Source: Octopus bimaculoides (Eukaryota). From it: a stretch of DNA of 64,000 nucleotides. The DNA lies in NCBI RefSeq assembly GCF_001194135.2, contig NC_068986.1, positions 31,439,187-31,503,186 of the forward strand, given 5' to 3'. A program made the translations under genes and the position numbers. Every line of letters starts with the position of its first letter. Position 1 is the first letter of the stretch. Positions 1,452-45,438 of this stretch are shown here, piece after piece. The notes under the pieces are model-generated. The model ran no database searches, was not told where the DNA came from, and was given only the letters and a program-made list of their open reading frames with translations.

Positions 1452-1564
1452 AAATGGTTGTCAATTCAACAGTTTATGGACCAGAGATAAAGAATGAATA
1501 TGTAAAAATTGACCTAAAATTTTCTCAAGGATATTTCAAGCCTGGTTTCACTTACTATGGGAAG
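1452..1564 (+). CDS. TEP exon (MG3/MG4 boundary)
   Basis: TACAG|..[38 protein letters not shown]|GT; resembles A2M 'FRxGIPFFGQ'; joins the next exon in phase 0. Confidence 0.85.
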
Positions 1565-4500
1565 GTTTGATACTTTTTCTTCACTTCCAGAACAATTCTG
1601 ATGATTAATTTGATTTAAATCTGATTATTTCATTTCCTATTTTATTGTAACTGTTATCACCGAGATGGCAAAGGGTACCTAAATGTTGGTTTCAAATTTT
1701 GGTTCAAGCCCAACAATTTCAGGGAAGGAGTTAAGTTGATTACAATCGACCTCAGTGTTCAACTGGTGCTTATTTTATCAATCCTGAAAGAATGAAAAGC
1801 AAAGTCAACCTCAGCTGAATTTGAACTCAGAACATTAAGATGGATGAAATGCTCCTAAGCATTTTGCCTTGTGTACTAACAACTCTGCCAGTTCACTGCC
1901 CTAAGGAGTACCTAAATATTACACATATTCTTAGTGTTAGCGAGTGAAGGAGTCTTTACATGGTCATTTGGTTTGCTCAAACTCGCAGCCAAATGTTTCT
2001 CAGATCACTACTACACTTTTGAAAAACAAAAAGTGGGAAGGACATATTGGAGAATGTGGTCCTAGATATTCTGATTTCAGAGAAGGTTGAAATGATAACA
2101 TTTGGCACTCCTTTGTTCATAGGCTATCTCAGTGAGAGAAGATCTGAGGATAAAGAGCCCTAACATTCATGTAATGTTAGCATCTTTATTTATATTGATG
2201 TGGGAGCATCAATATAAATATTACTGTTAACTCAATGCAACTTATGCAAGCAAACTGAAAAGAGTAAAATGTTAGCGACAAATAATAATAATTTCAAATT
2301 TTTGCCACAAGGGCAGCTTGGGGAAAGTGGGGGATGAGTTGATTACATTGACCCCAGTGTTCAACTGGTACTTATTTTATCAACCCCGAAAGGATGAAAG
2401 GCAAAGTCAACCTCAGTGGAATTTGAACTCGGAACGTAGCGACAGGCGAAATACCACTAAGCATTGCATCCAGTGCGCTAACGATTCTGCCAGGTTGCCG
2501 CCTTCACAACAAATAATAATGATAATAGAGACAATCATTACCCTCATCATTAATATCAATTTCAAATTTTGGTACAAGGTCAATAATTTCAGGAGATGGG
2601 GTAAGCCAATTACATCAACCCCAAATTATTTGGTAATTATTTATCAACTGGTAATTATTTTAATTATTTTATCGACCCCCCCCAAAAGAATGAAAGGCAA
2701 AGTTGACCTTGGTGGAATTTGAACTCAGAACGCAAAGATGGATGAAATGCTGCTGCACACTTTACCCAGCATACTAATAATTCTACCAGCTTGCCAACTC
2801 AATTTCAGCTAGTCATCTACGGTCACAGCTAGTGACTTAGCGTTACACAGCATTACATTTCTTATACATGTGGGTTGGTTATAAAGCCAAAAACCCTGTG
2901 GAAAAATTAAATAAATAGATAAATAATAATAATGAATAAGAAAACATAGGAGACAGTTTTAAGAGAAATTGTCTCAGAAAGTTGGACAGAACTGCAGTAA
3001 TTCTGAAAGGAAGCCAAAAATGATTGGTAGTTCTATTAGTCATCAAATCTTGCCTTCATATTATCAAAAGGACTAGAGGAAGAAATGATTTTTTTATGAA
3101 CTATGTTAAATGTTACATCCCATTAAACACATGGTCTTATTACAAAACAGTTACATCCATTTTATAGCTTTCTTTAAAATTATACACATTTTATTTTATT
3201 TTCAGGTTTTAGTTTCCAAACCTGACAACAGTATTGCTGCAGGAGAAGTTATAGAAGTCACAGCTGTTGACTTTGTCAATGACATTGAACTTGCTGGTAT
3301 TTTCACTTCCAATGAGAATGGAGAAATAGATTTTACCATTGACCACTTTGATAAATATACTGAAGAATTTGTACTTCAGGTAACAATATTATGTTCTATT
3401 CTTCTTTAATTTTCAAAATGTTTTCTTAAATGTAAGAGTAAACTGCCAATTGGATTAAGCATTCAGACTACATATCTGCTAATTTTGTTTCCATTTTCTA
3501 AGTTTCGCTATATCTTTGGATATGAGACTTAACCCTTTTGTGAACATATTTCAAATGAAATATACTGCTTTTATAATACTGATTATGTGGAGGTGCAATG
3601 GCCCAGTGGTTAGGACAGTGGATTCGCGGTCATAGGATCATAGTTTCGATTCCCAGACTGGACGTTGTGAGTGTTTCTTGAGCAAAAACACCTAAAGCTC
3701 CACGAGGCTCCGGCAGGGGATGGTGGCGAACCCTGCTGTACTCTTTCACCACAACTTTCTCTCACTCTTATTTCCTGTTTCTGTTGTACCTGTATTTCAA
3801 AGGGCCAGCCTTGTCACACTGTGTCACGCTGAATATCCCCGAGAACTACGTTAAGGGTACACATGTCTGTGGAATGCTCAGTCACTTGCACGTTAATTTC
3901 ACGAGCAGGCTGTTCTGTTGATCGGATTAACTGGAACCCTCAACGTCGTAAGCGACGGAGTGCCAACAACAAACAATACTACTTATATAATATTTCTTAT
4001 ATAATACTACTGTATCATAATTAAATTTGAAAATATTCAACAATTTGATGGGATTTAGTAAAATGACTAACTTTGTCATTAGTGTGTTAAGCCCACAGCT
4101 ATGTTCCAAACACCATCATATTAAGCTAGTGTTTAGAACATAAATCTGCCTCAAGCCTATTTGCTCTTGAAGCCCAAACATCTCAGAGGATTTTCAAGGC
4201 ATTTAAGCTGAGACTTCAAGACTGACTTCTGAAAGGGATGCCAGTCCATCACAAGGTTATCCTTCTGGTGCAATGCCAGCAAGTTTAGAGGGAGAGGGTA
4301 AATCAATTACATTGACCTCAGTACTTGACTGGTACTTTTTTTATGAAGCCTGAAAAGGGATGAAAGGCAAAGCTGACCTCACCAGAATTTAAACTCAGTA
4401 TGTAAGGAGTCAGAAGAAATGCCAACTAAGCATTTAATTCGCATGCTAATGATTCAGCCAGCTCACTGTTTTTATTCTTTGATAAAATCAAAATACAGAT

Positions 4501-5161
4501 AAGATATAAATATCAGAATTTGTTGGACCAAGATACACATATTTTAAAATTTTGTTTTGAATGATCCATTTTTTATTTTTTCATAGGTTTGGGAGATGGG
4601 TGTCTTCAAATTTAGATGTTTACATGAAATATTGAAACCTAGTGATCTATTTTTATTTGTTAACCCTATACTTACATGCTTAATATTGGCTTGTTTGGAA
4701 AGTTTGTGCCATAAAATTATTAACCATCTTAATTTCATATTTCATTTAAGCTATGAAGAAAGTAAAAACAGGCTCTAGAGAGCAAATACCAGGCATTTTA
4801 GTTGTTAGTCAGTGAAAGTAATATCTTCTCATACATATGCATGAGCTGATTGTTTCATCTGTTAATACATTATAAATTATTTCAGGCTCGATCCATTAAT
4901 GGGACTTTTGTCAATGAGGACAGCCATCACTATATGTACACACCAATTGATACATTCACTGTGAAACAGTGGTTTTCAAGAATGGGTAAATACCTTCAGA
5001 TTAAACCATTAGAAAAAAATCTCCGGTGCCATTCAAAGCTGAATCTTAATATTTTATACACAGCAACACTCAGGGAAAGAATCAACCTTTATTATTTGGT
5101 GAGTATCTGTAACTTCTTTAATGCAGCCCCAGAGATAATAAACTGCCATTTCAACTGTTCC

Positions 5162-5239
<78 letters not shown>

Positions 5240-5390
5240 GGTTAGTAGAATTGCTTATTATCCAAATCATTACTATAAGATTCATAAAGATGACTTCTGA
5301 AGACATATCATAGTAACATGAATCATTAGCTTCAAACAATAAAATAAAGTAGTAAGCACATTTTTCCTGCTTATGCAATAAAAGTACACA

Positions 5391-5422
<32 letters not shown>

Positions 5423-7398
5423 TACACACACTACACTCACACATACACATAGAGTTTCTCGATAACTGAATTTCTCTCATGATATGTATCATATATTCTC
5501 CATATAAGTATTTTTTTCTAAGTCAGTTTTAATGTCTTAAATTTTAGGTTATCATTTATGTGTAATAAAAAAAATAAATAATTGTTAAAATTTTTAATAA
5601 ACTTGCTAGTCTATATGCAATTATTTATTACAAGATGAAATGTGTTGAGAAAATTTCCAGTTTAAGTATATTTGTTACTCCTTATATTTTCAACTTTTAT
5701 CTGTTTTCCAGGTTATGTCAAAAAGTCAAATAGTTGCCAATGGTCAGATAGCTTTCCGTGCTGATCACCGTTATGTTTATAGAAAAGAACACTTTAACAA
5801 TTCCCTTAAAATTTCTGCTGATCCAGATGATGAAGTTTTATCCATGATGCCATATTCTAACCAAACTCAATCTTCACCCGGTTACCAAAAAGACGCAAAA
5901 CACAAACACATAAATTACAAAAACAAAAAGCATACTAAAAGGGGTATGTCTCTTTTTAAAAATATATTTATATTTACCATTTATAAAATACATGAAATAT
6001 AGAAATGTTTAATCAAATTACTTTCAACAAATTTTATTTTTCTACAGAAAATAATCGAAGATCTGATTCAGCACCCTTTATGGCTAAACTTGAATTTGAT
6101 ATCGACATCATCCCTGAGATGTCTCCACTCAGTTATATTTTGGTCTACTTGGTTGACGATAATGGAGAATTAGTGGATGATTACCAAGAGTTTTCAGTTA
6201 ATTCCTGTTTCAAAAATGAAGTAAGCTCCCTGTATATCTCTTAAATACATAGTAATTAATTCTTTGTGTATATTTGCATACATAAAGGTGAGTTTTGAAA
6301 AGTGTGAGAACATATGAATTGATATTTTCTGCCCCAGCCTTTTTTTTTTTTTTACCTGCTGAGTCTAGTTGGAAAAGTATTATCTATGACTGTTGCAGTC
6401 CCTCCTCCAAGACTGGTGAAATTGTGGCCATTAATTTTCCATTGAAAATGTATTGCAAGTCAATACATACAGAAAAAAACATGAATAGAGAAGAGAATAC
6501 ACAGGGCCAATGTTCTAAGAAGAAAAAAACTATTCATAGTGATTAGGAAAGACATGTATAGATAAGTAATTCCAGAAGACTGACATTCTGAGAAAGAAGT
6601 CCTGGGTATAGTATTTGGTAGGAACACAAGTGTGATGCGATGAGTTGGGTACACATCAGTGGTGATGGCATGAGTCCAGTCAACTTTGAGGAGTGGAGGC
6701 TATTTAGTACTGATATTTACATGTCATACAAAAAAATTATAAATATTTACAGTAATATTAACTTACAAAGATAATGTCATTAACAAAGTTAATTTTTTAT
6801 TAATATTTTTCTTTCCATATCTAGGTAGAATTTGATATTCCAAAAGGACCACTCTACCCGAATGATTATATTACATTTAATCTGAAAACTACTGGGAATT
6901 CAGTATGTGCTATAAACTTGGCAGACCGAAGTACCTTTTCTGGATGGGATAACTGGGTTACAGAACAACAGGTAAGCATGAAACTATTTTTATTATTCAT
7001 TAATTCCAAGTTACTTATGATAGGCACAAGTATGTTCCCTTCACAGACATGTGGTTCCAAAATTTGGTCATACTTTCAGCAAGTGTCTTCTAATGTGGTT
7101 TCCTGAAGCTGGCCAATGCCTTGTGAGGGAAATTTGATTGATGGAAACTGTGTGGAAGCCCATATGTGTATTTGTGTGTGTGCACATGTATGCATTTGCT
7201 TCTGTGTATACCAGTGCATTCAAAAGATAACCGTATCCATCTGATAAATAGAGACCTGTGTTTGATATAATCAAGTAAAATTCTTGAATGCTGTGCCCCA
7301 GCATGGCCATAGTCCAGGGACTGAAACTGATAGAAAAATGAAAAGAGGAATTAGCAACGGTGTTATGAATGAAATTTCAACCTTGTCTCCATAACTTT

Positions 7399-7481
<83 letters not shown>

Positions 7482-10400
7482 CATGGAGCTTCTTACACCA
7501 TTTAAACCATAAAAGTATATGTGAAGAGAAAAAAAAGAGAGAATTACTTTCAGTCAAAGAAAAAAAGTAACAAATATGACTGACTCTCAATATCTTGGAG
7601 TAAACATAATTAAATGACAATTCTATGTAGAAATGTTGGACTATATATATCAATTATACTAAAGTGACAGATTAATATTCTGTAAGATAATTTTCATGAG
7701 TTGCAGTAATATCTTTGTATCTACAACCTCAGCTTTATTTCAATGGTGTGGAAATAGCATAACATTAGCATAGTATTTAAAATATCATATTAGCATATTA
7801 TATACGGTTGTGTGAATAAGAAGTTTGCTTCACAACTATAAGGTTTAAGTATCAGACCCATGACTCAATGCCTTCTATTGTCTTAAACTAACCAAATTTT
7901 TGTGAGTGGATTTGGTTGATAAACTACAGTAAGCGTATCGCGTGTGTAAATGTGCACGAGTGTTGATATTTCCTGTATGTTGCCACGACTAGTAACTTTG
8001 TACATTCAAAGATCTCTGGGAAAAAAACATCCCTCATTTAAAAAACATCTAAAGGTTGGTGACAAAAAGAGTATCCAATCATAAAATCCTGCTTCAAATA
8101 ACTCCCCTTCCAACCCATGCTGACTTCAAAAACTGAATGTCAAACAAACAAATAAACGAATATGATTAAGAAGTGGTTTCCTCAATCATGCTTAATGAAA
8201 ATATACTCTGTATTAATTTTATCTTTATATGTTTTGTTGTTTATTATTTTTTTAAAGTATTTATTTAACTTTCACTCATAAAAAAAAATTAATTATAAGA
8301 TTATATCCCTTTTATTTTGTAGGTTTTCAATAAATTAAAAGAGCATCATTTTCAATTGAGCAGGTTTTATTCTGCTGAAGATAAACATTGCCAGAAGATT
8401 CTAATGGAAACACAACATGGAATTGAAATGAATGGTATGTACAGAAATATTAATTTCTTATAAATATTAATTTCTCTTTTTGTTTTGTCTTTGTTAAACT
8501 CAGGAATTTGTGGTGTTCATATTAGGTAAATAGATAAGGTTAATGCTGTTAATTTTCAGCTTGTAGCTCATACATAATCTTGAATATATAGTGCATATGT
8601 TTATTTGGCAAAAAAAAAATGAATGACCATCCTGAAATATAACAATATTTTACTAAATCTTTCCACATTCTTAATTATTTTCAAAATCAAGTGAAGCACA
8701 TGGACTGTATTTCATAAGAAATATAGCAACAAAGGAGTAAACTTATGTTTTAAATCTTATAAAAATAATCATGATTGTTATAAAGCAACTATGTAGTTAG
8801 GTGCAAGCAAGGCAAAATGCTTTGAGCTTTTATTTCATAAGTTTGAATTTTACTGCCAGCATTACATTGTTCCTTAAGAAAATATTTCATTTTTTTGTGA
8901 CTAAATTCCAGCATTATTAACAAATTTTCTATTTTGTTTATTTGCAATTTTTATTACTCCTTATTATTTATTGTTTATTATTCTTGATTAAATAATGTAT
9001 ATTCCTCTTTCTTTGATACAGAACACAGAAAGAAACGTGTTGCTTCTGTATATTCATCAAGATATGTTGATGCAATGTTTGCTTTTAAGGTAAGACTGAA
9101 GAATTTATTTAATAATTTGTAGCAAGTGCTTTAGATTCCTGGTAAATTTCCAGGAATTTTGATTTCTGATTGGATCCCAGGTTTGACTGAATGCCTAAGA
9201 AATCTGCTTCACAACTATGAAGTCTCACTGCCTGGCACCTTAGATGGGCAAGGGACTTTTACAATTGCCTCAAGTCAGCTCAAGCCATGAGAGTAAAATT
9301 ATATTGATGGTACTTTGTAGAAGTTTGTATTATGGATTTTGCCTGTAAATAAAATGGCCATTCTTATCACAGTCAGTATCATGCTGAGTCTACTTGAGAA
9401 TTATGTTATGGATGTAAGTACCTGTGGAATATTCAATCACCAAGTTTATAATAAAATAAAGCAGTTCTGTTGATTGAACATCTGAAACTTGTATTGTAAA
9501 AACTGAGACACAAGCTCTATCATATTTATATCACTAATGAACTTTAGACAAGAAATCATAAAATTATATATTTTTTTTTGTTTATAAGTCTAATATTTTT
9601 TGCTTATGTTAGGAATAAAATATTTACTTATTGTCAAATAATAACTGATAAATTATGTAATTAATTAGATAATATGCTACATTTTCCTATTATTAATAAT
9701 ATCAGTACTGAATAATTATGTAAAAGCAATTAAAATTACAATTCTGTTTGTAAACATTTGGATATTCTTATACCTGATGCAATATTTACAACATAGTCTT
9801 CGACACTGTGTTTATGAGAAATGAATATATCAATTCTTGTTGTTCAGTTGAATTAGGTCAGTCTAGCTTGGTACTTAGGCATAAGATATTTAGAATTGTA
9901 AACCGTCTGCTGATACTTCTGAACATATCTACATTCATGTATTTTCATGTTCGCAAAATGGTAACTTTCTCATTTACAATGATAACACAACACACAGATA
10001 AGGAATAAGAAACATCTTACAAAGTTGTCTTCTTTTAGATATGTGCTTGTACTTTTTTTTTCTTTTTTAAATATCATAATGATAAAGGATGAAACCTTTC
10101 TAGTGGTGTATGGCTTCTGTTGTGTCATTCAATCTCTAAGGGATGTGAGATTGATAGTCTGCTGTGCAAGTAGGCAAGTAAATTGTTTTAGATATTTAGA
10201 ATTGTATTCTTTATTACTAAAAAAAAAAAAAAATTCTGAAATGCAGTTTCAACAGGTTTCTTTCAAATTCTTGAAAGAGCTTTCTACATTATTTTTTACC
10301 ATAAATTTATGAGACAACTTTTCATTGTCGTGTTGTTTAGCTCGGTGCTATTCCAGATCAAGTAGACCTAAGTTGAAAGAAGCTGCAGTCAGTCTTCTGT

Positions 10401-13140: not shown

Positions 13141-13194
<54 letters not shown>

Positions 13195-13195
13195 G

Positions 13196-13279
<84 letters not shown>

Positions 13280-14521: not shown

Positions 14522-14563
<42 letters not shown>

Positions 14564-14579
14564 TACACACACACAAATA

Positions 14580-14612
<33 letters not shown>

Positions 14613-14622
14613 NNNNNNNNNN

Positions 14623-14708
<86 letters not shown>

Positions 14709-16105: not shown

Positions 16106-16140
<35 letters not shown>

Positions 16141-16420: not shown

Positions 16421-16451
<31 letters not shown>

Positions 16452-18587: not shown

Positions 18588-18682
<95 letters not shown>

Positions 18683-27794: not shown

Positions 27795-27885
<91 letters not shown>

Positions 27886-33200: not shown

Positions 33201-36200
33201 TTACTGTTTCACTGACTTCAGGTGCTAGACTGTGGCTATGCTGGAGCACCACAAAGTTTTACTTGACCATGTGGTAAGAAGTTTGCTTCCCAACCACATG
33301 GTTCTAGGTTCAGTTCCACTGCATGGCACTTTCGGTGAGTTTCTTAGCCCCAGGCTAACCAAATCCTTGAAAGAAGCCTGTCATATGTATTGGGTCATCC
33401 CATAAATAATGCAGTTTTTTTTAATACTTCTTTTATTTTTCAAAATTAAGATAAACAAAGTTCTTTTTTAATCTAAAATATACTCTCCTTCATTTTCTAC
33501 AATGCTCTTCCATCTTTCTGGTAGACTTGTAAGGCCCTTCTTCCAAAATTCACTTGTCTGTAATGAAAAATACTCCTCCAGTACTGTTCTGACCTCGTCT
33601 ACAGAATTCATGTTTTCTCTGTCCAAACAATTTTGAAGACTGCAGAATAAATGATAATCAGATGAGGCAACGTCCATCTGCATTTTTCTGCTTTTAAAAA
33701 GAAAAAAGGATTTTATCCTTTATATCTATACTGTTCAGTATCTATGCGTTGAATAAAATTTATCTTTCTACTTGTTCTACCATACATTTCAGCGCTTCGA
33801 AAACAAACTTGTTTGTTTACATACGGTGTAAAACAAAATAAATTAATATTTACTGCTTATCTAGTTTTGTGTCTGCTTTAATATTTGTGTTGTTTTAATG
33901 ATCTTTCAGCCAAAACATGCAGAAAGAGTCGGTGTTAAAAAGTATGAAATGACAGAAGACTATGTATATTTATATTTTGATGAGGTAAGTGTAAAACTAC
34001 ACATAGAATTTCTATAATACACATATGTGCTCCACATTATACATAGATTCATTCAACTATATATAGATTTATTCTGCTGCACGTAGTTTTACTACAGTAC
34101 CCATAGATTGACTCTACTTCACATAACCTTAATTGCTCTATCTACCATACTGCAGTCAATTTGAATAGCTGGGCCCTCTTTCTCCCATCCATTCTCCTCA
34201 TCCAGCAACCACTCATAGTAGCACTTCTGTGCCTCTTTCATTCCATAACACACTTCTCTCCACACAGTATCTCAATTCTCTCCAGTACACTGCTTTGCAA
34301 TCCCAGAATGCATCATGCTGTACTCTTTCACCACAACTTTCTCTCACCCTTTCTCCCTGTTTCTGTTGTACCTGTATTTCAAAAGGACCAGCCTTGTCAC
34401 ACTCTGTGTCACGCTGAATCTCCCCGAGAACTACATTAAGGGTACACGTGTCTGTGGAGTGCTCAGCCACTTGCATGTTAATTTCACGAGCAGGCTGTTC
34501 CATTGATCGGATCAACTGGAACCCTCAATGTTGTAACCGACGGAGTGCCAACAATTCACATCCACTTGCCTCCATTCTAGCATCTTCAATATCTTGTTGA
34601 TAGCAGCAGCTCTAAAGTTTTTCTCCAGACAAGAAAAATGAGGATTTTCAGAGATGATGCATTTGATTCTTATTTAACTTCTACATCTGAGAAAAGAAAA
34701 TTTAAAAATTAGAAAGATTGGACAATTGCTTGTTAGCGGTCAGAATGATTTCACACATGATTACACGTTTTCACCAATGGTTGGTATGCTGTTATTTGTC
34801 CACTCACCATGATTCACTACATGCAATTATCATTATTGTTATTACTGCTATCAATAACTTTGAGATGTTTTAGTCTTTGTCACTTAGCATGATAGGTGTT
34901 AGGATTACAAAAAAGAAAAACACACCAGTTACCAAAGGGAAGACTTCATGGTAGTCTTTCTGGAATTGGTGTTGGCTGTGTGCATTAGGAGATAAGCAAC
35001 ACATGCTTTTGGTTTTAGTTTATCATTATAAAAACTGCATGAGAAGTGAATACGTCATAGATATTAATAATATCAATAACAGATAACATATATAATGATT
35101 AATTAAAGCAAACAATATGGTTTCCTTAGCTTGTTTACAGGAAACAAAAAGTATTGAAATGAACAGTGTCTTGGAAAGTCAAGTATATAAAAAGAGGCTG
35201 AATGTAAGGTGGGAACAGAGAGACAGACAAACAGACAACTGGATAGCGAGGCAGGAAGGGAGAGAGATTTACAGCAGTACTGATGTTCTATTTATGCGAT
35301 TGTTACTAATTATTTTGTTTCTTTATTTGTAAAGATGAATAAAACTGCAAAATGTATTGAAATCGAGATTGAACAAGTGTTGGCATTGAGCAGTCTTCCA
35401 GCAGGAGTGGTCGTCTATGATTATTATGATAGAGGTCAGTATCTTTCAGTACGTACATACATACATACATACATATATATATACAATCATAGTGGAGGTG
35501 CAATGGCCCAGTGGTTAGGGCAGCAGACTCACTGCACTTTTGATTATGTACTTGTCTATATGTTTTTTAATCATACCTAATGCGCCTATTATTATAGGGT
35601 TTTATTATTATTATAGGATTGTTTTTTTTTTGTTTTTTGGGGGGATTTTTAAGCCCTAAATCTACTGTTATTTCTTTTATGAAAATCCATTGATTATGTC
35701 CAATAGTCTAAAACAAGAAAAGACACTAATATAACCCATAATTTCTTGTGTACCTGTCATGTGATTCATTTAATTGTCATTTTCCTTTTTCTTTTATCTT
35801 CTAGATGTGATTGGTCATACCTTGTATGGACTGAAAACAACATGTGGAACCAAAGAAGAACTACCAGTAGTTTCTCAAGAGACATATGAAAATTCTATGA
35901 CACAACAAAGACAGCCTATTGGACTACCCCCTGCACTACAAAAGTTGTTAAAGCTAAAATCTAAAAACGTAAACCATATGAATGCTGCAGCAGGTATGTT
36001 CCTAAACTGGAAACCTAACAATTGTAGATCATTTATTGTCACTTAATAGTGGTGTCTTGGAGTAAAGGAAAAGTTTCAAATGAACAGAGTCAGCAATCTG
36101 GTTTTTATTGTCACTTCACTTATTTTTCTATAATCATAAGGGGGGGTGGTATGAATATTACAACTTCTCTTGTCCCCTTCCTTAAAATCTCATATTCCAT

Positions 36201-39200: not shown

Positions 39201-42200
39201 TGTGCCTAGAGTAGAAAAGATTATTCTAGAGATCCTTAAAATTAAAATGCTCAGTAATTAGTGTTGTCAGTTTAATTTCTGCAGTGCATCATAACTATAA
39301 ATGGATTAAAATTTGACAAATATTTTCATCTTTGTCATCATCGTTGCTGTCATTATTGATGGTGGCACCAAAGAAAAAAAAAAGTTTAATAGCGTTTCTT
39401 CTGGCCTTACATTCTGAGTTCAAATTCCACTGAGGTTGACTTTGCCTTTCATCCTTTCGGGAGATCAATAAAATGAGCGTCACTTGAGCAATGGATTCAA
39501 TGTAATTGACAAGACTCCTCCCACATATCTTACTAGTACCCTTATGCCTATAGTAGAAAAGTTTATCAATTCCATCTGGTGGATTGGCTGAATAAATGTT
39601 TTTCGGTATTTGTTCCAGCTCTTTACATCCCGAGTTCAATTCCTTAGAAGGCCTATTTTGTTGTTCATCTCTCTGGAGTCAATGAAATAGACTTGTTGTT
39701 GGCACTCCGTTGCTTACAACGTCGAGAGTTCCAGTTGATCCGATCAACGGAACAGCCTGCTCGTGAAATTAACGTGCAAGTGGCTGAGCACTCCACAGAC
39801 ACGTGTACCCTTAACATAGTTCTCGGGGATATTCAGCGTGACACAGTGTGACAAGGCTGACCCATTGAATTACAGGCACAACAGAAACAGGAAGAAAGAG
39901 TGAGAGAAAGTTGGGGCGAAAGAGTACAGCAGGGTTCGCCACCACCCCTGCTGGAGCCTCATGGAGCCTCATGGAGCTTTAGGTGTTTTCGCTCAATAAA
40001 CACTCTCAACGCCCGGTCTGGGAATCAAAACTGTGATCCTATGACCGTGAGTCCGCTGCCCTAACCACTGGGCCATTGCACCTCCTCAATGAAATAGTCA
40101 AGTATTGGGATTGATGATATCAACAAACTCTCTTCTCTCAAAACTACTGACCTTATGTCTAAATTAAAAGCAATTATAATTCCATCTAATATATGTCCCA
40201 GGCTCTTCAAAATCAAATAACTATGAGCAGTACTGGTCAGGTTCTTCATAGTTTCAAGACTATTTTTACCTTTTGTTTGTTTGCTCAAACAAAGACATTT
40301 TACAAAATAAAATCTTACATATAGTAAACTTTAGTTTGAATTTTCAGAAACAGCCAGCTCTATCACAGAAAATCAGCAGAGTGAATCAGCTATTGTACCA
40401 AATGGCACCCAAGTCATTAACACAGCCAATAGTACCTTCAACGCAACTTCTCCACGTAGAAAAACTGTTGCTGAAATAAGTATCACACTGAAAACGACCA
40501 GCGTCAGTTTTCTCACAGAGTATGCTGAGCCAATACCAGTAACTACAGCGTCCAGCACAAATGTAAGCGCTGAAGCAAGCAAAGAACCTATTCTGGTCAA
40601 TTTATCAAGAAATCATAAAAAAAAGGTAAGCTTCAGTGCTTTTCAAATTATATCAAATTATCGTCATCATCATCATCATCATTATATACTAAATGATGAT
40701 GATGATATTGGAGATGATAAAGAGAACTTGTATTAATTGATAGCTATAATACATATCGGAGGCGCAATAGCCCAGTGGTTAGGGCAGCGGACTCACGGTC
40801 ATAGGATCGCGGTTTCAATTCCCAGACCGGGCATTGTGAGTGTTTATTGAGCGAAAACACCTAAAGCTCCACGAGGCTCCGGCAGGGGATGGTGGCAAAC
40901 CCTGCTGTACTCTTCCACCACAACTTTCTCTCACTCTTACTTCCTGTTTCTGTTGTGCCTGCAATTCAAAGGGACCAGCCTTGTCACACTGTGTCATGCT
41001 GAATATCCCCGAGAACTTCGTTAAGGGTACACGTGTCTGTGGAGTGCTCAGCCACTTGCACATTAATTTCACAAGCAGGCTGTTCAACTGAAACCCTCGA
41101 CGTCGTAAGCGACAGAGTGCCAATAATAATAACATAATACATATCACATAATATGCCTGCAAGCCATGTAATGAGCCTCTACACCAGTAATTATTTACCT
41201 GTGCAGTACCATCTCACTGGGTGTATTGTGAGTTCTAAAGTCGATGGATGCTATGGTGGTTCTGTGTGCTTAAAGGGATCATGATGAAATAGTCAACCCT
41301 TTAGCATTCAGATTACTCCATCAAATGTAATGTTTTTTTATTCATTGTTTTGAATTAAGCATGCATTATCTTGTGGCTTCAACATTTTGATGATGTAATT
41401 GTTTATTATTTGACATTGTAGTGTAAATGTGAGAGGTCAGACCTAACTGGTTTGAACATAAAACAAGTAGAATATTTGCACCAGATATGACCTGCTTGAA
41501 TACTGAAATGTTAAACCAGGTACAAGATTTATTTTAAATGGTCCAATATAATTTCCATAAAAAGTTAACCTAAGAGACACTAATCCAATGCAAATATCTA
41601 AAGGGAGGTACATGGGATTCTATGAGAAATAATGGATAAATGACTTTGCTAAATTAGCTTCTGTTTAATTAAAACAATAGGTTTTGTGATTTTCTTATAA
41701 CTCAGTAACCCACTTCCATTTACTGAATGATATTTGCAAGTTGCCATTTGGTGGAAGGGGTTTATTGAGAATCACTGAGCTAGATGGTTGCTCAACCCAT
41801 TATGAATAGATAATGAATTATATTATCAATTATATCCTACCATCATAAAAAGGTAAGACACAATGGATAATGTTGTCCTAGATAATCAGTGCTCTTCCAA
41901 AGGTTGGATGGTCAAAGCTGCAACACTTTTGGTCATAGGTCTGCTCAGTCAGGGCTTACTTAAGGCTAAAGTAATACAGCTATGAATCATGTGACAACAG
42001 AGTGAAACAACTGTATGGTCAACTACATAAATTAAGTAATTCAGATTTATGGAAAAACGAAAGATGAAAGGTATAGGAACAACAACAAGTAAGTGTATTA
42101 GTTTGTTGCTCAGGAAAAAAGGAAAAGTCCTTTACGTTTCAAGCCTATGCTCTTCAACAGAAAGGAATAAGAGGAAATAGAGAGAGAATGAAAAGAAAAT

Positions 42201-45200
42201 GTGTAGAAAAACGCTAAATTAAAACTAATTTTGGTGGCTCTTTATTTGACAGAATTGTCCAGTATGCTGGGATAATGTACCAAAAGATTATCACAAGTTA
42301 TTCTGCAATGCAGTAGAAGGTAAATAAAAATCTTTCATTTTGTATCTATTAAGTTCAATTTTTGACTATAAAACTATTGGGTTGTCCGGAAAGTTTGTGC
42401 AGATTTATAGTAGCTTACCTTTCGACTTATTTTAGAACATGGTTGAATCCATAAAATAGGATTTGACTACACTTCCATTTAGAGCACAGTTTAAGCTATT
42501 TTTTCTTGGAAGAAGGTTTATGTTCCTATAACCTGTGTTAATTCTGTAACCTTTTAAAATGGAAGATAAGAAAGTTCATTTTCGGGACTTGATGCTTTTC
42601 TTTTTTCGTAAAGGGAAAAACGCCTCACAAGCAACCAAAGAAATATGCGCAGTTTACGGTGATGTTTCTTTATCTGAAAGAACTGTATGAAAGTGGTTCA
42701 CAAGGTTCCAAGCTGGAGATTGTAGCCTTATTGATAAAGAGCGATCAAGCAGACCATCCACTACAGATGATGACCAAAAGAAGTCATTAATTAAGAATAA
42801 CCCACATTGCAAAACCCGACAATTGGCAGAAAGTCTCAACCTATCAAAATCCATCGTTCATGAGCACCTGGTAAAGCTTGGGTACACAAATCGCTACAAT
42901 GTTTGGGTATCACATGAGTTGAGTGAGAAGAACCTTTTGGATTGCATTTCCATCTGTGATTCACTTTATAAACAGAATGAAAACGTGCCTTTTTTTTTTT
43001 TTAAAGCAAATTGTGACAGGTGATGAGAAACGGATTATCTACTGAAATGTTCAGAGAAAGCGATCCTGGAGTAAGCGACATGAGCCACTCTTAGCCACCC
43101 CAAAAGCGGGTCTTCACCCTAAAAAAGTTTGCTTTGTGTCTGGTGGGAGTGGAAAGGAATTCTGTACTATGAGCTTCTCCCAAGTAACCAGACAATTAAC
43201 TCTGAGAAATACTGTACACAAAGGCCACCTTTCATTTGTCCACTCGTGTGAGTGTCAGTAGAGGAAAAGTAGTCACATTAGTTATGAACATCAACAATTT
43301 GGCTTTGAAAGCAAATACACCAGGAGAGTGTTCTACAGATTGAAACCTCGTACAGCTTACCAATTTTCAGTCCAACTGTCCAACCCATGCCAGCATGGAA
43401 AACAGACATTAAATGATGATTGATTAATTACTTATAGTTTTACCAGCTGAGGTGAATATGTTTCACTGTGAAGGTCTATTAAAGTCCAAACATCTGTTTT
43501 CACTAACTGGCATTGGCTTAAAGACCAAATCCATGCAAGTCTTCATCGTCTATAGTATTTCTATTTGTTGATCTTGTTAAAGTTATTTTATTTTCTTGCA
43601 GGTTTTAGATTTTAAATACACCTACTAAAGGAGAATTTTTTTCCTCTCTGCTAATAAGAGTTCAACTCCTATTTATGAAAAAAAAAAAAGAAAATTCCAT
43701 TTTATATATTTATAGTTTATAAAATATCTTCTGGAAAGAACAAAGAACATTTAATACGGGTTATGGCAGATCTTCGGCCAGTGAAGAAATTACAAATTAA
43801 AAAATTTGTTGTCCCCAAAATGGACAAATCTTGTGAATGTGCCTGTATAAAGGAAAAAGGTAAGGCTCACAATGTATTGACTTTTATTTCATTAACCTAC
43901 CCCCTACCCAACCAACTTTCAACACTGTAAATAGAAATTAATTCAGTAAGCAAACAAAGGAAAATTAATTTTCCTGTTAGCAAATGAAGAAATGAAGCAC
44001 AGTGGTAGTTCTTGTAGGTATATTTGACTTAATGATGAAACGCATGGCTTAGTGATTAGAATGTTGGACTCCAGGACGTAAGATTCTGGTTTTGATCCCT
44101 GGACCAGGTAACGTTGTGTTCCTCATCAAAATACTTCATTTCATATTGCTCCAGTCCACTCAGCTGCTAAAAAAATTAGCAATCCTGTGTCAGCCCAGGG
44201 TCCCATACATATATATATACATTGGAGAAACTGGGAAACCAACCTTGTGCTCCTTACAAACTAATCATATTTGACTTAATACTTGTAGTGCATTGTTTTC
44301 TTTGAAAGCTTTATTCGGTAACTATGGCTTTTGATGATGTATGCAATGTGAAGTATGAACATTCCTATTTACAATACTAGTATACTTACACTATTTCAGC
44401 ATATTTGTGGGACATTTATTTGAATTTATCTATTCTATTTCTCCCATAAAAATGTGAGCTTTATTTAGAAATACCATAGCATCTCTACCAGTTAAATACC
44501 CCTCAACCAGTTTATTTACATGACTTTCAATAAGCTCACAAATAGTATAGTTAATGTATTTAATTCCATTCTAAGGTTTGAACATCTGACCATGTAGCCA
44601 TTAGTCTAGCAACTAAAGCTTACAGCAGCAACTGTGATAAATAACCCAGTTCATGAGCTTATGGCTTTTGATTTAAAATCAAATAGGTCAGATGATGACA
44701 GGTAAAGACATTCAAGACTTGACTTACCTGTTTTCCTTTTAAATAGTAGCAAATTAGTCTCAAATTGTACCTTGCATTTTGTGATGGATCAAGCAACCAC
44801 AGAAAAGAAAAAAAAAAAAAACCCTCTTTCGTTTAGTTAAGATGCTTGTATTTATTGTAGAGTAATTTAATTATTAAATAGACAAGAGGGGTTTGGGGAA
44901 ACTACTGCTTCCATTAGCAAAAGGATTTCTTTACTCTGAAAATCAGAATGTTGTTGACATATGGCAGTAAAATTTACGTATTAAATTATGCGACTGAATT
45001 GCAAAAGTCTCCATCAACAAGCTTGAAATGTAATGCCTTTGGGACATTCTTCAGACGAGATGGCAAGACAATCACCTGTCTTGACAAATCTCTTACAGAT
45101 AGCCATCTCAATTCTTGATGGCTGTCTATAAAATATCTTTCTATGTGTAAATGTTAACTCCAAGATCTTTTGAAATTTGATAGTCTAAATACATTATTAC

Positions 45201-45438
45201 CATCTCTACTTCTCTTTCCACCCTCACCTCCGTATTTTTAGTGATGTCAAATTAACTCCTCACTTAAAATTGCCTTTTGCGTTTTATTTCAGGACGCCGA
45301 GTCTTAATGCGAATGAAAGCTGGGCCAAAATTCAAAGACATGGGTCCTGTTCGTCTTGACAAACATGTTGTTATATTTCAACTTAAATCTGTTGTAGAAA
45401 GACACATGCGTAGACTGGCAAAGTCTTGCAAGAGATGA
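1452..45438 (+). CDS. Alpha-2-macroglobulin/TEP-family protein lacking the thioester, with C-terminal mucin-like linker and NTR/C345C-like domain (5'-partial, 29 exons in window)
   Basis: Exons: 1452-1564, 3206-3379, 4886-5098, 5712-5943, 6048-6220, 6825-6971, 8323-8434, 9022-9089, 15754-15859, 15969-16104, 19254-19482, 20875-21024, 21660-21761, 22105-22156, 23668-23760, 24052-24228, 25190-25509, 26201-26360, 28957-29144, 30455-30673, 31409-31524, 33087-33171, 33910-33984, 35335-35434, 35805-35993, 40348-40625, 42253-42319, 43716-43859, 45293-45438. All are GT-AG with matching phases and total 4364 nt, open to TGA at 45436-45438. A2M hallmarks appear in the correct order: [72 protein letters not shown]. 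Confidence 0.93.
1685..2800 (-). mobile_element. Three tandem copies of tRNA-headed SINE family D (1685-1905, 2293-2505, 2560-2795)
   Basis: Reverse complement of GAGCTGGCAGAATCGTTAGC...GAGTTCAAATTC...GCCTTTCATCCTTTCGGGGTCGATAAAATAAGTACCAG (A/B boxes plus conserved core). Confidence 0.8.
3206..3379 (+). CDS. TEP exon (MG4)
   Basis: TTCAG|[18 protein letters not shown]...[11 protein letters not shown]...FVLQ|GTAAC. Confidence 0.9.
3588..3976 (+). mobile_element. tRNA-headed SINE family B
   Basis: GGAGGTGCAATGGCCCAGTGGTTAGG...GTTTCGATTCCC head; GGAGTGCCAACAAC tail. Confidence 0.88.
4886..5098 (+). CDS. TEP exon (MG4/MG5)
   Basis: TTCAG|ARSINGTF...[14 protein letters not shown]...NLYYL|GTGAG. 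Confidence 0.9.
5712..5943 (+). CDS. TEP exon (MG5 plus basic insertion)
   Basis: TCCAG|[12 protein letters not shown]...[15 protein letters not shown]|GTATG (phase 1). Confidence 0.88.
6048..6220 (+). CDS. TEP exon (MG5)
   Basis: TACAG|..[36 protein letters not shown]|GTAAG; matches A2M 'P...llvY....GEvvaD...f.V..Cf.N.V'. Confidence 0.93.
6825..6971 (+). CDS. TEP exon (MG6a)
   Basis: CTAG|[36 protein letters not shown]...TEQQ|GTAAG. Confidence 0.9.
8323..8434 (+). CDS. TEP exon (linker)
   Basis: TGTAG|[37 protein letters not shown]|GTATG. Confidence 0.85.
9022..9089 (+). CDS. TEP exon carrying RKKR processing site
   Basis: TACAG|[23 protein letters not shown]|GTAAG. Confidence 0.88.
10455..10950. 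repeat. Higher-order AT-rich satellite, ~15 units of TATGTATGCACATACATATAGA(TA)n
   Basis: Units counted by eye; variable (TA)n spacer. Confidence 0.9.
11662..11817. mobile_element. Small TIR element (MITE)
   Basis: CAGAGGCATAGC ... GCTATGCCACTG (11/12 inverted match). Confidence 0.5.
13330..14430 (-). mobile_element. Tc1/mariner-superfamily DD37D (maT-type) transposon remnant, internally deleted
   Basis: HTH-like [24 protein letters not shown] (14071-14334) and catalytic C-half WQQ(V)[19 protein letters not shown] with 37 residues between the second-D position and the final D. Confidence 0.85.
14845..15170 (+). mobile_element. SINE family B2 (different core, same 3' half as B)
   Basis: tRNA-like head, GTGTCCTTGAGCAAGACACTTTA core, then the B-type tail; an antisense copy lies at ~16595-16850. 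Confidence 0.72.
15754..15859 (+). CDS. TEP exon (start of bait-like region)
   Basis: TTCAG|[35 protein letters not shown]|GTAAG. Confidence 0.88.
15969..16104 (+). CDS. TEP exon (bait-like region to FxETWLW)
   Basis: TTCAG|[46 protein letters not shown]|GTTGTT. Confidence 0.9.
16105..16451. repeat. (ATT/GTT)n trinucleotide microsatellite, ~347 bp
   Basis: Directly visible; begins at a splice donor. Confidence 0.97.
18377..18846 (-). mobile_element. tRNA-headed SINE family A with internal (CA)n
   Basis: Reverse complement of GTGGCTGTGTGGTAAG...GGGTCATTCCCACTGCG...GCGGTGCTCCAGCATGGCTGCAGTCAAATGACTGAAACAAGTAAAAGAG. Confidence 0.88.
19254..19482 (+). CDS. TEP exon (MG6b/MG7)
   Basis: TCTAG|..[25 protein letters not shown]...[19 protein letters not shown]...KKCLT|GTAAG. 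Confidence 0.93.
20321..20404. repeat. Perfect 28-bp x3 minisatellite
   Basis: AAAGGGGATCTGACCTCACAGCAGAACA x3. Confidence 0.95.
20875..21024 (+). CDS. TEP exon (MG7)
   Basis: GATAG|IGLQVKVSS...CLCKEEY...IGVINVTVQ|GTAAG. Confidence 0.87.
21660..21761 (+). CDS. TEP exon (MG7)
   Basis: TACAG|[34 protein letters not shown]|GTAAG. Confidence 0.85.
22105..22156 (+). CDS. TEP exon (CUB start)
   Basis: TTCAG|[17 protein letters not shown]|GTATG (A2M 'PEG...e.t.n...Cp'). Confidence 0.87.
22335..22752. mobile_element. TIR element (MITE)
   Basis: CAGTGCTGGATTAA ... TTAATCCAGCCC ends. Confidence 0.5.
23668..23760 (+). CDS. TEP exon (CUB)
   Basis: TTCAG|[31 protein letters not shown]|GTAAT. Confidence 0.92.
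24052..24228 (+). CDS. TEP exon homologous to the thioester exon (motif degenerate)
   Basis: TCTAG|[39 protein letters not shown]...IMEK|GTATG. Confidence 0.93.
25190..25509 (+). CDS. TEP exon (TED)
   Basis: AACAG|[19 protein letters not shown]...LTAFVLRIL...[12 protein letters not shown]...[17 protein letters not shown]|GTATG. Confidence 0.95.
26201..26360 (+). CDS. TEP exon (TED)
   Basis: TTTAG|[11 protein letters not shown]...[14 protein letters not shown]...RRSKVL|GTAAT. Confidence 0.92.
27354..27581 (+). mobile_element. piggyBac-like non-autonomous element family E
   Basis: Ends (TT)(A/G)ACCCTTTAGCATT ... AATGCTAAA(G/A)GGTTAA; copies at 36946-37707 (interrupted), 41295-41515(-), 47765-47945(-) and 56254-56456. 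Confidence 0.75.
27973..28203. mobile_element. piggyBac-like non-autonomous element family F
   Basis: TTAACCCTCTTGATACCA ... TGGTAACAAAAGAGTTAA (TTAA ends plus imperfect TIR). Confidence 0.65.
28957..29144 (+). CDS. TEP exon (TED)
   Basis: TACAG|GEETFW...[10 protein letters not shown]...[17 protein letters not shown]|GT. Confidence 0.95.
29502..30198. other. Assembly gap (N)
   Basis: Other gaps: 14613-14622, 24420-24719, 31656-31749, 37451-37460, 58293-58471. Four of the six have a (TA)n tract on at least one side. Exon chains stay continuous across all of them. Confidence 0.99.
30455..30673 (+). CDS. TEP exon (TED end/CUB)
   Basis: TTCAG|[13 protein letters not shown]...[10 protein letters not shown]|GTAAA. 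Confidence 0.94.
30973..31204 (-). mobile_element. Mariner-derived MITE (same TIR as 42375 element)
   Basis: TIRs TATTGGGTTGTCTGGAAAGTTCGTGCC / GGCACGAACTTTCCGGACAACCCAATA; the interior encodes [26 protein letters not shown] on -. Confidence 0.9.
31409..31524 (+). CDS. TEP exon (MG8)
   Basis: TTAAG|TSLKYNVL...FHLRVGV...[13 protein letters not shown]|GTTAG. Confidence 0.9.
32082..32365 (-). mobile_element. Family C retroposon copy
   Basis: (ATC)n end, GTTTAACGTCCGCTTTCCATGCTAGCATGGG, tandem internal modules; close to the copies at 59205 and 62285. Confidence 0.8.
32426..32794 (+). mobile_element. Helentron-associated (HINE/DINE-1-like) element
   Basis: 5' ATTACCTCTGCCTTAGCAAAGGCGGAGGT palindrome, (GTTT)n, 3' GGCGGAGGT subTIR and GCGCTC-TCT-GAGTGC hairpin; partial copies at 62783-63058(+) and 47498-47645(-). 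Confidence 0.72.
33087..33171 (+). CDS. TEP exon (MG8)
   Basis: AATAG|[28 protein letters not shown]|GTGAG (A2M 'YTG...SNMAIVDVKMVSGF.P'). Confidence 0.92.
33388..33870 (-). mobile_element. Mariner remnant (C-terminal fragment, different TIR)
   Basis: [10 protein letters not shown] (YSPDLAPSDY-type motif)...[18 protein letters not shown]; TIR-like TATTGGGTCATCCCATAAATAATGC; right boundary approximate. Confidence 0.8.
33910..33984 (+). CDS. TEP exon (MG8)
   Basis: TTCAG|[25 protein letters not shown]|GTAAG. Confidence 0.92.
34305..34553 (+). mobile_element. SINE family B, 5'-truncated
   Basis: Body and tail match 3745-3970. Confidence 0.82.
35335..35434 (+). CDS. TEP exon (MG8 end)
   Basis: TAAAG|[33 protein letters not shown]|GTCAG. 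Confidence 0.92.
35805..35993 (+). CDS. TEP exon (post-MG8 linker)
   Basis: TCTAG|[29 protein letters not shown]...MNAAA|GTATG. Confidence 0.85.
37070..37512 (+). mobile_element. SINE family A, full length, inserted into a TTAA MITE
   Basis: GGCGCAGGAGTGGCTGTATGG A box, GGTTCAGTCCC B box, (AAAGAGT)n tail; other copies at 17069-17370(-), 19854-20090(-), 28488-28915(-), 49955-50305(+), 51338-51715(+), 55432-55647(-) and 61450-61815(+). Confidence 0.9.
38113..38382 (-). mobile_element. Mariner-derived MITE; related copy at 21147-21320 (+)
   Basis: Imperfect TIRs AGGGGGTGTTGAAAAGTTCTCGGCTTT / AAAGCTGGGAACTTTTCAGCACCCTCT; the 21147 copy reads [20 protein letters not shown]. Confidence 0.78.
39005..39228 (+). 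mobile_element. SINE family D, full length
   Basis: A box AGCTGGCAGAATCATTAGC, B box GAGTTCAAATTC, core CTTTCATCCTTTCGGGGTCGATAAA; further copies at 4270-4470, 16460-16590, 26765-26890, 31750-32030 and 39380-39570. Confidence 0.82.
39693..40085 (-). mobile_element. SINE family B, full length with TSD
   Basis: TSD TCAATGAAATAG at 39679-39690 and 40086-40097. Confidence 0.92.
40348..40625 (+). CDS. TEP exon, Ser/Thr-rich mucin-like segment
   Basis: TTCAG|[36 protein letters not shown]...[28 protein letters not shown]|GTAAG; open for 278 nt with phases fitting both neighbours; not in the ORF track. Confidence 0.8.
40758..41133 (+). mobile_element. SINE family B, full length with TSD
   Basis: TSD ATAATACATATC at 40746-40757 and 41134-41145. 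Confidence 0.92.
42253..42319 (+). CDS. TEP exon, NTR/C345C-like domain part 1
   Basis: GACAG|[22 protein letters not shown]|GTAAA. Confidence 0.85.
42375..43222 (+). mobile_element. Mariner transposon remnant (5' TIR plus disrupted N-terminal 2/3 of transposase)
   Basis: TIR TATTGGGTTGTCCGGAAAGT; MEDKKVHFR.., WVSHEL, IVTGDEK, LHPKK.. with stops and frameshifts. Confidence 0.9.
43716..43859 (+). CDS. TEP exon, NTR/C345C-like domain part 2
   Basis: TATAG|[48 protein letters not shown]|GTAAG. Confidence 0.83.
45293..45438 (+). CDS. TEP last coding exon, NTR/C345C-like domain part 3
   Basis: TTCAG|[48 protein letters not shown]. Confidence 0.83.

Follow-up and report, generated by a model that had tools for sequence, protein, structure and literature searches.

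What does a protein of the A2M type do once its thioester is lost, and what does a basic, cysteine-patterned domain at its C-terminus contribute? These questions are raised by a gene on the forward strand of a 64,000-nucleotide stretch of Octopus bimaculoides DNA (NCBI RefSeq assembly GCF_001194135.2, contig NC_068986.1, positions 31,439,187 to 31,503,186; hereafter the window, in whose own coordinates all positions are given). A preliminary description had viewed this gene as a thioester-dead member of the thioester protein (TEP) superfamily with a hybrid architecture, possibly representing a mollusc- or cephalopod-specific class that might be undescribed. Based on an independent rebuild of the gene and on its comparison with relatives from several animal groups, we find a real octopod gene, most of it contained in the window, which is a member of the A2M family of the protostome type. 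The tail of the encoded protein, whose last domain appears to be a divergent NTR (C345C-like) module, is also found on A2M-like proteins of other animals. In the explanation that we favour, the product would be a furin-cut, thioester-less A2M that traps proteases sterically and is docked by its NTR module.

Gene structure and completeness

The exon chain was built from the stop-free stretches of the plus strand, on the basis of splice-site quality and reading phase. This rebuild gave 29 exons between 1452 and 45438 (Table 1), with the same limits and count as in the preliminary description, and in it every acceptor is AG, every donor is GT and all phases are consistent. The reading frame is entered in mid-codon, within MG4, and stays open over 1453 residues. 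While the limits and number of the exons stood, the start of exon 12 had to be corrected to the position given in Table 1; an acceptor at 20887 was ruled out, no AG being present there. A candidate exon in 44918-45115 was also rejected: it is out of phase, and the direct join of exon 28 to exon 29 keeps the NTR consensus.

The window is intron-rich, has a G+C content of 35% and contains six runs of N, of which five fall within introns of the gene, namely introns 8 (14613-14622), 16 (24420-24719), 19 (29502-30198), 21 (31656-31749) and 25 (37451-37460), and the sixth (58293-58471) lies outside it. Because the protein is unbroken across the junctions flanking all five introns when compared with the orthologue from Argonauta hians (and, for introns 16, 19 and 21, also with human A2M), no exon is hidden in these gaps. 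Although the 29-exon frame is intact, the gene itself is cut by the window edge: MG1-MG3, which make up about 315 residues at the N-terminus of the orthologue (MG2 and MG3 were found in this part), have no match within the window and lie upstream of it.

An A2M-type core without a thioester

The domains of the encoded protein run from MG4 to MG8, with CUB and TED, followed by an anchor and a linker and then by the putative six-Cys NTR module. Pfam identifies TED_complement (5e-60), A2M_BRD, A2M_recep, A2M and MG4, and in a phmmer search of the PDB the best match is human A2M (5e-87), followed by A2ML1 (1e-82), CD109 (2e-69), mosquito TEP1 (5e-43) and C3 (2e-33). Judged by these similarities, the core, which the preliminary description had already called A2M-type, belongs to the A2M branch of the TEP superfamily, nearer to A2M and A2ML1 than to C3/C4/C5, CD109 or the insect TEPs. 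The Pfam scan of the window protein returned no ANATO, LDLa or Kazal domain, in line with the earlier statement that there is no anaphylatoxin domain. The C-terminus (...RRLAKSCKR) is basic and hydrophilic and has no hydrophobic tail.

The alignment with human A2M places TNGEG where GCGEQ would stand, with Asn in the position of the Cys and Gly in that of the Gln, so that the reported lack of GCGEQ is upheld. With both partner residues replaced, the Cys-Gln thioester cannot form. The dead motif (NGEGN) is kept in at least three lineages, namely the octopod of the window, Argonauta and a further locus (L001; ENA ERZ21867824, contig ctg120398l, 4243-20401) whose exons are 42-65% identical to those of the window and which would be an orthologue from a more distant cephalopod, or else a paralogue. 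The sharing of this replacement by all of these lineages means that the loss is old and that the protein stayed useful after it.

The RKKR site claimed in the preliminary description is present, in the linker joining the two halves of MG6 and about 40 residues ahead of the tetra-Arg position of C3; it precedes the GLTL...RPC segment, whereas the tetrabasic beta/alpha site of C3 follows the MG6a 'GLTF...C' segment. The segment from RKKR to MG6b contains a single Cys. The furin-type site is kept in both octopods (as RKKR in the window and as RRKR in Argonauta). In a scallop relative (XP_069137675.1, P0012), which has an intact thioester together with the NTR-like tail, the sequence around residue 760 reads 'LETRPCSRRRRLP', a tetra-Arg site at the position of C3 beta/alpha processing.

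The bait-like region that had also been described was found at the expected place, as a stretch of 53 residues (15805-16072, spliced) with a pI of 4.05 and 12 Asp/Glu against 1 Lys/Arg. Elsewhere in the core, MG5 has an insertion of about 45 residues relative to human A2M (5880-6090, exons 4 and 5, model residues 223-250), which is His/Lys-rich, basic and conserved in Argonauta; the scallop and abalone relatives have insertions here as well, which are longer and acidic or Pro-rich, and the abalone insertion includes RRKR.

Evidence that the distal exons are part of the gene

Without the donor at 35993, the frame of exon 25 would run on for 17 codons to a stop at 36044-36046; with it, the four distal exons (26 to 29) chain in phase to the final stop codon. 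A word-indexed search (shared 5-residue words) found no relatives, either with MG8 plus tail as query or with the tail alignment, and just 3 exon-level open reading frames (ORFs) with TED as query. This blank did not mean that relatives are missing: an exhaustive HMMER scan with the 274-residue tail over 1.84 billion representative proteins gave 19 matches. The top match is the Argonauta hians orthologue (GAB1607259.1, deposited as 'murinoglobulin-1-like isoform X1'), a protein of 1757 residues of which the last 262 (1496-1757) align with the whole 274-residue tail at E=1e-105 and 71% identity. To its residues 316-1757 the whole model aligns at 80.6% identity with 28 of 28 junctions unbroken, and neither the set of exons nor their order differs in the Argonauta locus (L003).

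The ratio of non-synonymous to synonymous substitution (dN/dS; Nei-Gojobori, against Argonauta) is 0.072 in the core (1167 codons), 0.087 in exon 25, 0.135 in the aligned part of exon 26 and 0.093 in the three NTR exons, with synonymous sites near saturation (proportion of synonymous differences, pS, about 0.6). Because neutral DNA that had diverged to this degree would not align, the tail exons are constrained coding sequence, and the whole gene, including the tail, is under strong purifying selection. Additionally, in other taxa MG8, the linker and the Cys domain are spanned by one uninterrupted ORF on a contig of about 1 kb (P0006-P0009), and these contigs are most simply taken as transcripts. 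Intron 25 contains no candidate signal-peptide first exon of a separate downstream gene, and no poly(A) signal occurs within 600 nt of the read-through stop; three ATTAAA/AATAAA signals follow exon 29 (45972, 46387 and 46404). The earlier assignment of the distal exons to this gene is therefore retained, given the end-to-end Argonauta orthologue, the constrained tail exons and the lack of a first exon in intron 25.

Two further observations concern the Argonauta sequences. Residues 1-20 of GAB1607259.1 (P0004) read 'MKYLVRKILDVQLVLRS', unlike a signal peptide. Clear signal peptides are present in the scallop and abalone relatives, so that the deposited model may have a mispredicted first exon. 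In L003, the exon-16 equivalent (70164-70343) is preceded, just upstream, by two extra copies of its first 18 codons (70028-70149, with a period of 68 bp), and no such duplication was seen in the window.

A glycosylated linker and an NTR-like terminal domain

The linker (155 residues) and the terminal domain (118 residues, with 7 Cys) have the sizes and the Cys pattern previously given, and only the term 'mucin stalk' has to be abandoned. The 93 residues encoded by exon 26 comprise 30% Ser+Thr and 5% Pro, with five N-glycosylation sequons, and no tandem repeats were found in this exon. This composition points to a glycosylated linker (the sequons being predicted) and not to a mucin domain. Within it, the 102 nt that encode a block of 34 residues differ from Argonauta at synonymous sites only (17 differences, against 0 non-synonymous ones), and part of the linker is therefore a constrained peptide.

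As for the terminal domain, 16 homologous tails align over their full length, with seven invariant columns (C, P, C, C, C, C, C; six of them Cys) and a nearly invariant Y-K pair. Using this 16-sequence alignment, AlphaFold2 predicts a helix, a five-stranded barrel and a second helix with a mean predicted local distance difference test score (pLDDT) of 88.7 and a predicted template modelling score (pTM) of 0.82; a prediction from the single tail sequence (pLDDT 39) was discarded. In a Foldseek search of the PDB with this model, nearly all of the top 20 matches have an NTR fold (the C345C domains of C4 and C5, the PCOLCE-1 NTR, agrin NtA, hookworm ES-2, Sizzled, the Meteorin-like NTR and TIMP-1/2). 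The Pfam family NTR (PF01759) matches 6 of the 16 homologous tails and no other family recurs; one of these tails (from the Tegillarca cluster) reaches 24.0 bits against a Pfam cut-off of 21.9, and the other five score 16-19.5 bits. The case for a divergent NTR (C345C-like) module, as had been suggested before, is thus good but not decisive. The module is very basic (pI 10.0, with 30 Lys+Arg in 118 residues, or 25%), and among the 16 tails of the alignment, 14 have a pI above 9. The seventh Cys of the window domain lies in CECAC (43832-43846), which corresponds to CNCTS in Argonauta and to CxC in all relatives; left unpaired, it could permit an intermolecular disulfide.

The tail is shared by A2M-like proteins of other animals

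In the relatives that share the tail, MG8 is followed by a 'CGTKEELP' anchor, a 'QxRQP' ('QxRQP..LPP') motif and a six-Cys domain of the pattern CPxC...C..VYK...ADLRP...CxC...C. This plan is found in bivalves (the scallop Argopecten irradians, XP_069137675.1, and the blood clam Tegillarca granosa, KAJ8304934.1), in gastropods (Haliotis asinina XP_067665112.1, H. rubra, Batillaria KAK7480021.1 and Plakobranchus) and, beyond the molluscs, in the bryozoan Watersipora (XP_067933198.1) and the cricket Gryllus (GLH07010.1). The relatives scanned by Pfam show the A2M domain set, with no ANATO in P0004, P0012 and P0013. Wherever a mollusc record covers the thioester site (Argopecten, Haliotis, Batillaria and Tegillarca), GCGEQ is intact; the entries from Watersipora and Gryllus are fragmentary and start only past this site. 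The window protein is 29-31% identical to its bivalve and gastropod relatives.

Because the same architecture occurs on A2M-like proteins of other animals, the NTR-like tail is a trait of protostome A2Ms, and the octopod gene is a thioester-less derivative of that family; by comparison with these relatives, the lost thioester, the furin-type site, the longer glycosylated linker and the strong divergence set the octopod gene apart. Two suggestions of the preliminary description thus fall: that the protein fits none of the known architectures and is a hybrid, and that its class is restricted to molluscs or cephalopods (the bryozoan and the cricket carry the same tail). The orthologue is already deposited, and thioester-dead molluscan TEPs with C345C and no anaphylatoxin domain (BgC3-1 and BgC3-3) are already published (PMC7016707). 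On most protostome A2M-like proteins the NTR-like tail escapes standard domain tools, and in a literature that was incompletely covered we found no paper describing an NTR on proteins of the A2M type.

Comparison with known systems

The closest known protein is the Argonauta orthologue, which shares the dead motif, the furin-type site at the same place, the anchor, the linker block and the NTR-like domain; its linker is a few residues shorter and its last domain has 6 Cys instead of 7. It is known as a database record, and no functional study of it was found. The other protostome A2M-like relatives have the same core of MG domains, bait, TED and RBD, followed by the anchor, the 'QxRQP' motif and a basic six-Cys domain. 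They differ in the GCGEQ of the mollusc members, in the spacer ahead of the Cys domain (shorter in most of them) and in the furin-type site, since none has RKKR here and the RRRR of the scallop comes just after the RPC cysteine.

With C3/C4/C5 the octopod protein shares a C-terminal NTR-like domain after MG8, an anchor cysteine and a candidate site for chain processing by a proprotein convertase, and the C345C domains of C4 and C5 are the best matches to its predicted tail structure; one of these factors, C5, has no thioester either. In contrast to them, it lacks an anaphylatoxin domain, has a core much nearer to A2M and a cleavage site elsewhere in the linker, and bears an NTR so far diverged that no pairwise sequence match is left. 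A C-terminal NTR does not discriminate between complement and A2M, as A2M-like relatives have it too.

Ovostatin, a tetrameric, thioester-less bird A2M that inhibits by steric entrapment only, has a comparable core without a thioester, but it is a vertebrate protein with neither an NTR tail nor furin processing. The classical alpha-macroglobulin of Octopus vulgaris, with a large subunit and from the same animal group and protein family, reportedly carries a reactive thiol ester according to a 1992 purification paper, and would then probably be encoded by another paralogue in which the thioester is intact. This haemolymph protein is a disulfide-linked dimer (PMC9156758). Unlike MCR/TEP6, the octopod protein shows no LDLa match and no C-terminal hydrophobic tail of the transmembrane type; unlike CD109, it ends in a basic, hydrophilic C-terminus with no hydrophobic tail resembling a GPI signal; unlike CPAMD8, it has no Kazal match, and its tail is NTR-like instead.

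Published molluscan counterparts are BgC3-1 and BgC3-3 from Biomphalaria glabrata, which have a mutated thioester, a C345C and no anaphylatoxin domain and were placed in a C3-like clade (PMC7016707). Compared by this description only, they resemble the octopod protein in all these features and differ in being without an Arg-rich processing site. The same survey took C345C as a mark of complement factors and BgA2M as the baseline architecture, with no extra domain (PMC7016707).

Proposed mechanism and alternatives

The best explanation overall, to which we assign a probability of about 0.6, is that of a thioester-less protostome A2M that is cut by furin, acts as a steric trap and is docked by its NTR. 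In this mechanism the protein would be secreted, and a furin-type convertase would cut RKKR between the halves of MG6, so that the mature molecule would consist of two chains, like C3 and C4. A target protease would then cleave the acidic bait-like loop and trigger the compaction usual in the A2M family. With no thioester, the protease could be held only sterically, which would need a dimer or tetramer, as in the thioester-less ovostatin. Finally, the basic NTR, on its glycosylated tether, would dock the molecule or its complex to a partner protein or to polyanionic ligands, candidates being the glycosaminoglycans on haemocytes, matrix or microbial surfaces. C345C domains bind factor B/C2 and C6/C7, and the NTRs of PCOLCE, sFRP and netrin bind heparin. 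The functions guessed at in the preliminary description (non-covalent trap, opsonin or tethered scaffold) would seem reasonable.

Several points weigh against this explanation, each step of which we infer. True bait regions are usually hypervariable, whereas the bait-like stretch is not: its identity to Argonauta (79%) equals the protein average, and its exons are constrained (dN/dS about 0.04 in exon 9; proportion of non-synonymous differences, pN, 0.08 in exon 10). It may serve one conserved protease, or be no bait at all, and with its conservation and single basic residue it suits a broad trap less well than it suits a dedicated protease or a non-inhibitory role. The window's own tail falls below every Pfam and PDB sequence threshold (no Pfam match at E<=1), and phmmer and hmmsearch against the PDB, with the tail, the tail profile or the best NTR-scoring relative, gave no meaningful match. 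The Foldseek E-values are modest (best 2e-3, at a probability of 1.0, with template modelling scores of 0.47-0.58), and the assignment of this tail to NTR rests on its homologues and on the predicted structure. The Argonauta model GAB1607259.1 may itself be a homology-based prediction. As for trapping and oligomeric state in the A2M family, monomers need the thioester, as monomeric A2ML1 does in order to inhibit (PMC9156758), and an oligomer of the octopod protein is presumed.

Part of this evidence would suit other functions. The lost thioester, the conserved and acidic bait-like loop, the strongly conserved 34-residue linker peptide and the very basic NTR are also what a non-inhibitory carrier or matrix protein might show, its A2M cage being a binding scaffold (for growth factors, lectins, or mucus or egg-coat components) anchored to the matrix by the NTR, and several thioester-less TEPs are indeed non-inhibitory (MCR; PMC7016707). 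We regard this as unlikely, given that the elements of the trap (MG ring, bait-region domain and CUB-TED-MG8) are all under purifying selection. A complement-like factor of the C3/C5 type, namely a two-chain scaffold or opsonin that is no inhibitor and whose NTR recruits serine protease or lytic partners, would account for the NTR that follows MG8 and the anchor cysteine, as in C3/C4/C5, for the furin-type site, whose place in the chain, within the MG6 linker, resembles that of the C3 beta/alpha junction, and, as in C5, for the missing thioester. A conserved, non-hypervariable 'bait' would suit its single dedicated activating protease, and the thioester-mutated snail TEPs with C345C and no anaphylatoxin domain were classed as C3-like (PMC7016707). 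However, with no Pfam ANATO and a single Cys between RKKR and MG6b, with RKKR about 40 residues upstream of the C3-equivalent position, with a core whose similarity to A2M, A2ML1 and CD109 is far above that to C3/C4/C5, and with tail-sharing relatives that are all A2M-like and have bait regions (most of them GCGEQ-intact), such a factor seems improbable.

Two other explanations question the gene itself. The distal exons (40348-45438) could be a separate gene or chance frames, the A2M gene ending with exon 25 at the stop at 36044-36046; the open frame beyond the 35993 donor and the failure of the word-indexed searches to find tail relatives could be read in this way. Against it stand the strength of that donor, the five downstream junctions (all in phase), the orthologue and the many relatives that join MG8 to the same tail, the dN/dS of 0.09-0.14 in tail exons whose synonymous sites are near saturation, and the lack of both a candidate first exon in intron 25 and a poly(A) signal after 36046, so that we give this possibility very little weight. 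Even less credible is a decaying, non-functional A2M copy: the hallmark thioester is gone and the identity to other molluscan A2M-like proteins is only 29-31%, but the 29-exon frame is intact across 44 kb (as it is in the orthologue), dN/dS is about 0.07 over 1167 codons and the dead-site motif is itself conserved in three lineages.

Features of the locus

The coordinates of the exons and of the motifs within them are collected in Table 1. The window holds no second TEP copy, and no paralogous or alternative bait exons were found in it. On both strands of 45500-64000 there is no convincing protein-coding gene, just short ORFs and repeat-like sequence.

Table 1. Exons and sequence features of the octopod gene. 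Exon rows generally rest on splice sites and phase, on the Argonauta hians alignment and on exon-level dN/dS against the Argonauta locus L003.
Feature	Position	Strand	Basis
Exon 1 in window, MG4 start, entered in mid-codon; earlier exons upstream of window	1452..1564	+	AG/GT, Pfam MG4, dN/dS 0.06
Exon 2, MG4	3206..3379	+	splice sites, orthologue
Exon 3, MG5	4886..5098	+	splice sites, orthologue
Exon 4, MG5, basic His/Lys-rich insertion vs human A2M	5712..5943	+	splice sites, A2M alignment, orthologue
Exon 5, MG5, Pfam A2M_BRD	6048..6220	+	splice sites, Pfam, orthologue
Exon 6, first half of MG6	6825..6971	+	splice sites, orthologue
Exon 7	8323..8434	+	splice sites, orthologue
Exon 8, bears the RKKR furin-type site	9022..9089	+	splice sites, orthologue, dN/dS 0.02
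RKKR (R-X-K/R-R) site; RRKR in Argonauta	9027..9038	+	sole R-X-[KR]-R in 1453 residues
Exon 9, GLTL...RPC motif, start of bait-like stretch	15754..15859	+	splice sites, orthologue
Exon 10, rest of acidic bait-like stretch, ETWLW motif	15969..16104	+	splice sites, orthologue
Exon 11, second half of MG6 and MG7, Pfam A2M	19254..19482	+	splice sites, Pfam, orthologue
Exon 12	20875..21024	+	acceptor 20875 set by phase and orthologue 'CLTIELQVKV'
Exon 13	21660..21761	+	splice sites, orthologue
Exon 14, CUB	22105..22156	+	splice sites, orthologue
Exon 15	23668..23760	+	splice sites, orthologue
Exon 16, TED start, dead thioester site	24052..24228	+	A2M alignment, orthologue, dN/dS 0.01
PITNGEGNI replacing PYGCGEQNM	24102..24128	+	human A2M alignment; motif identical in Argonauta and L001
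Exon 17, TED	25190..25509	+	splice sites, A2M alignment, Pfam
Exon 18, TED	26201..26360	+	splice sites, orthologue
Exon 19, TED	28957..29144	+	weak donor AAG/gttttt; set by unbroken A2M and orthologue match
Exon 20, TED end, CUB	30455..30673	+	splice sites, orthologue
Exon 21	31409..31524	+	splice sites, orthologue
Exon 22, MG8, receptor-binding domain	33087..33171	+	splice sites, Pfam, orthologue
Exon 23, MG8	33910..33984	+	splice sites, orthologue
Exon 24, MG8	35335..35434	+	splice sites, orthologue
Exon 25, MG8 end, strong donor CAG/gtatgt	35805..35993	+	splice sites, orthologue, dN/dS 0.087
Anchor in exon 25	35831-35866	+	
Conserved motif in exon 25, after anchor	35903-35932	+	
Exon 26, 93-residue Ser/Thr/Asn-rich linker, 5 N-glycosylation sequons	40348..40625	+	splice sites, dN/dS 0.135
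34-residue block within exon 26 linker, identical in Argonauta	40446..40547	+	codon comparison
Exon 27, start of NTR-like domain (CPVC...FC)	42253..42319	+	splice sites, tail alignment
Exon 28, middle of NTR-like domain (VYK...ADLRP...CEC)	43716..43859	+	splice sites, tail alignment, dN/dS 0.05
Exon 29, end of NTR-like domain, last Cys, TGA 45436-45438	45293..45438	+	splice sites, tail alignment

The introns contain several repeats and mobile-element remnants. Intron 27 carries a degenerate remnant of a Mos1-type mariner transposase (42550-43260, +; Pfam HTH_48, 2e-20), whose frame is broken by a stop and whose mariner-like ORF pieces continue to about 43258. In intron 8, ORFs on the minus strand (13452-14349) resemble the C-terminal part of a Tc1/mariner-type transposase, with only a weak Pfam match to HTH_Tnp_1 (E=0.008) and none for the DDE part. 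A dispersed repeat family has at least five intronic copies with shared translations (3671-3918, 34249-34503 and 40840-41088 on the plus strand, 16534-16725 and 39668-39832 on the minus strand), and a second short element also recurs. The donor of exon 10 is directly followed by a trinucleotide array of about 350 bp (TTA/TTG-type, 16105-16460), whose frames read poly-Leu, poly-Ile or poly-Tyr. Long (CA)n, (TG)n and (TA)n tracts lie near 850-1000, 5140-5240, 7400-7500 and 10400-10950, with further dinucleotide tracts of this kind near 13180-13260, 14400-14700, 18600-18700 and 27800-27900.

Implications for the thioester protein superfamily

Taken alone, the gene is of modest interest, being an A2M-family gene, already deposited by way of its orthologue, from which the thioester has been lost. 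Its tail leads to a wider question. The presence of a C345C-like NTR on protostome A2Ms suggests that this module may predate the split between A2M and complement, and we put forward, as a possible though rather doubtful idea, that a C-terminal NTR is ancestral to the whole thioester-protein superfamily and is not an invention of the complement branch. Protostome A2Ms (those of molluscs, bryozoans and orthopteran insects) and C3/C4/C5 may then have kept the series of MG8, anchor Cys, linker and NTR, which vertebrate A2M, CD109 and the insect TEPs may have lost. If this is true, the rule that equates C345C with a complement factor (used, for example, in PMC7016707) would misclassify proteins. 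A profile made from the 16-tail alignment would expose the NTR tail in other sequences and would allow testing whether the NTR is ancestral to both branches of the superfamily. On the same idea, the octopod gene would amount to an experiment of nature, its A2M cage and NTR having been kept while the thioester was lost. With its trap, furin-type site and NTR all constrained, the octopod protein offers a case in which to study the role of the cage without covalent capture, and the same natural case bears on what the NTR module contributes.

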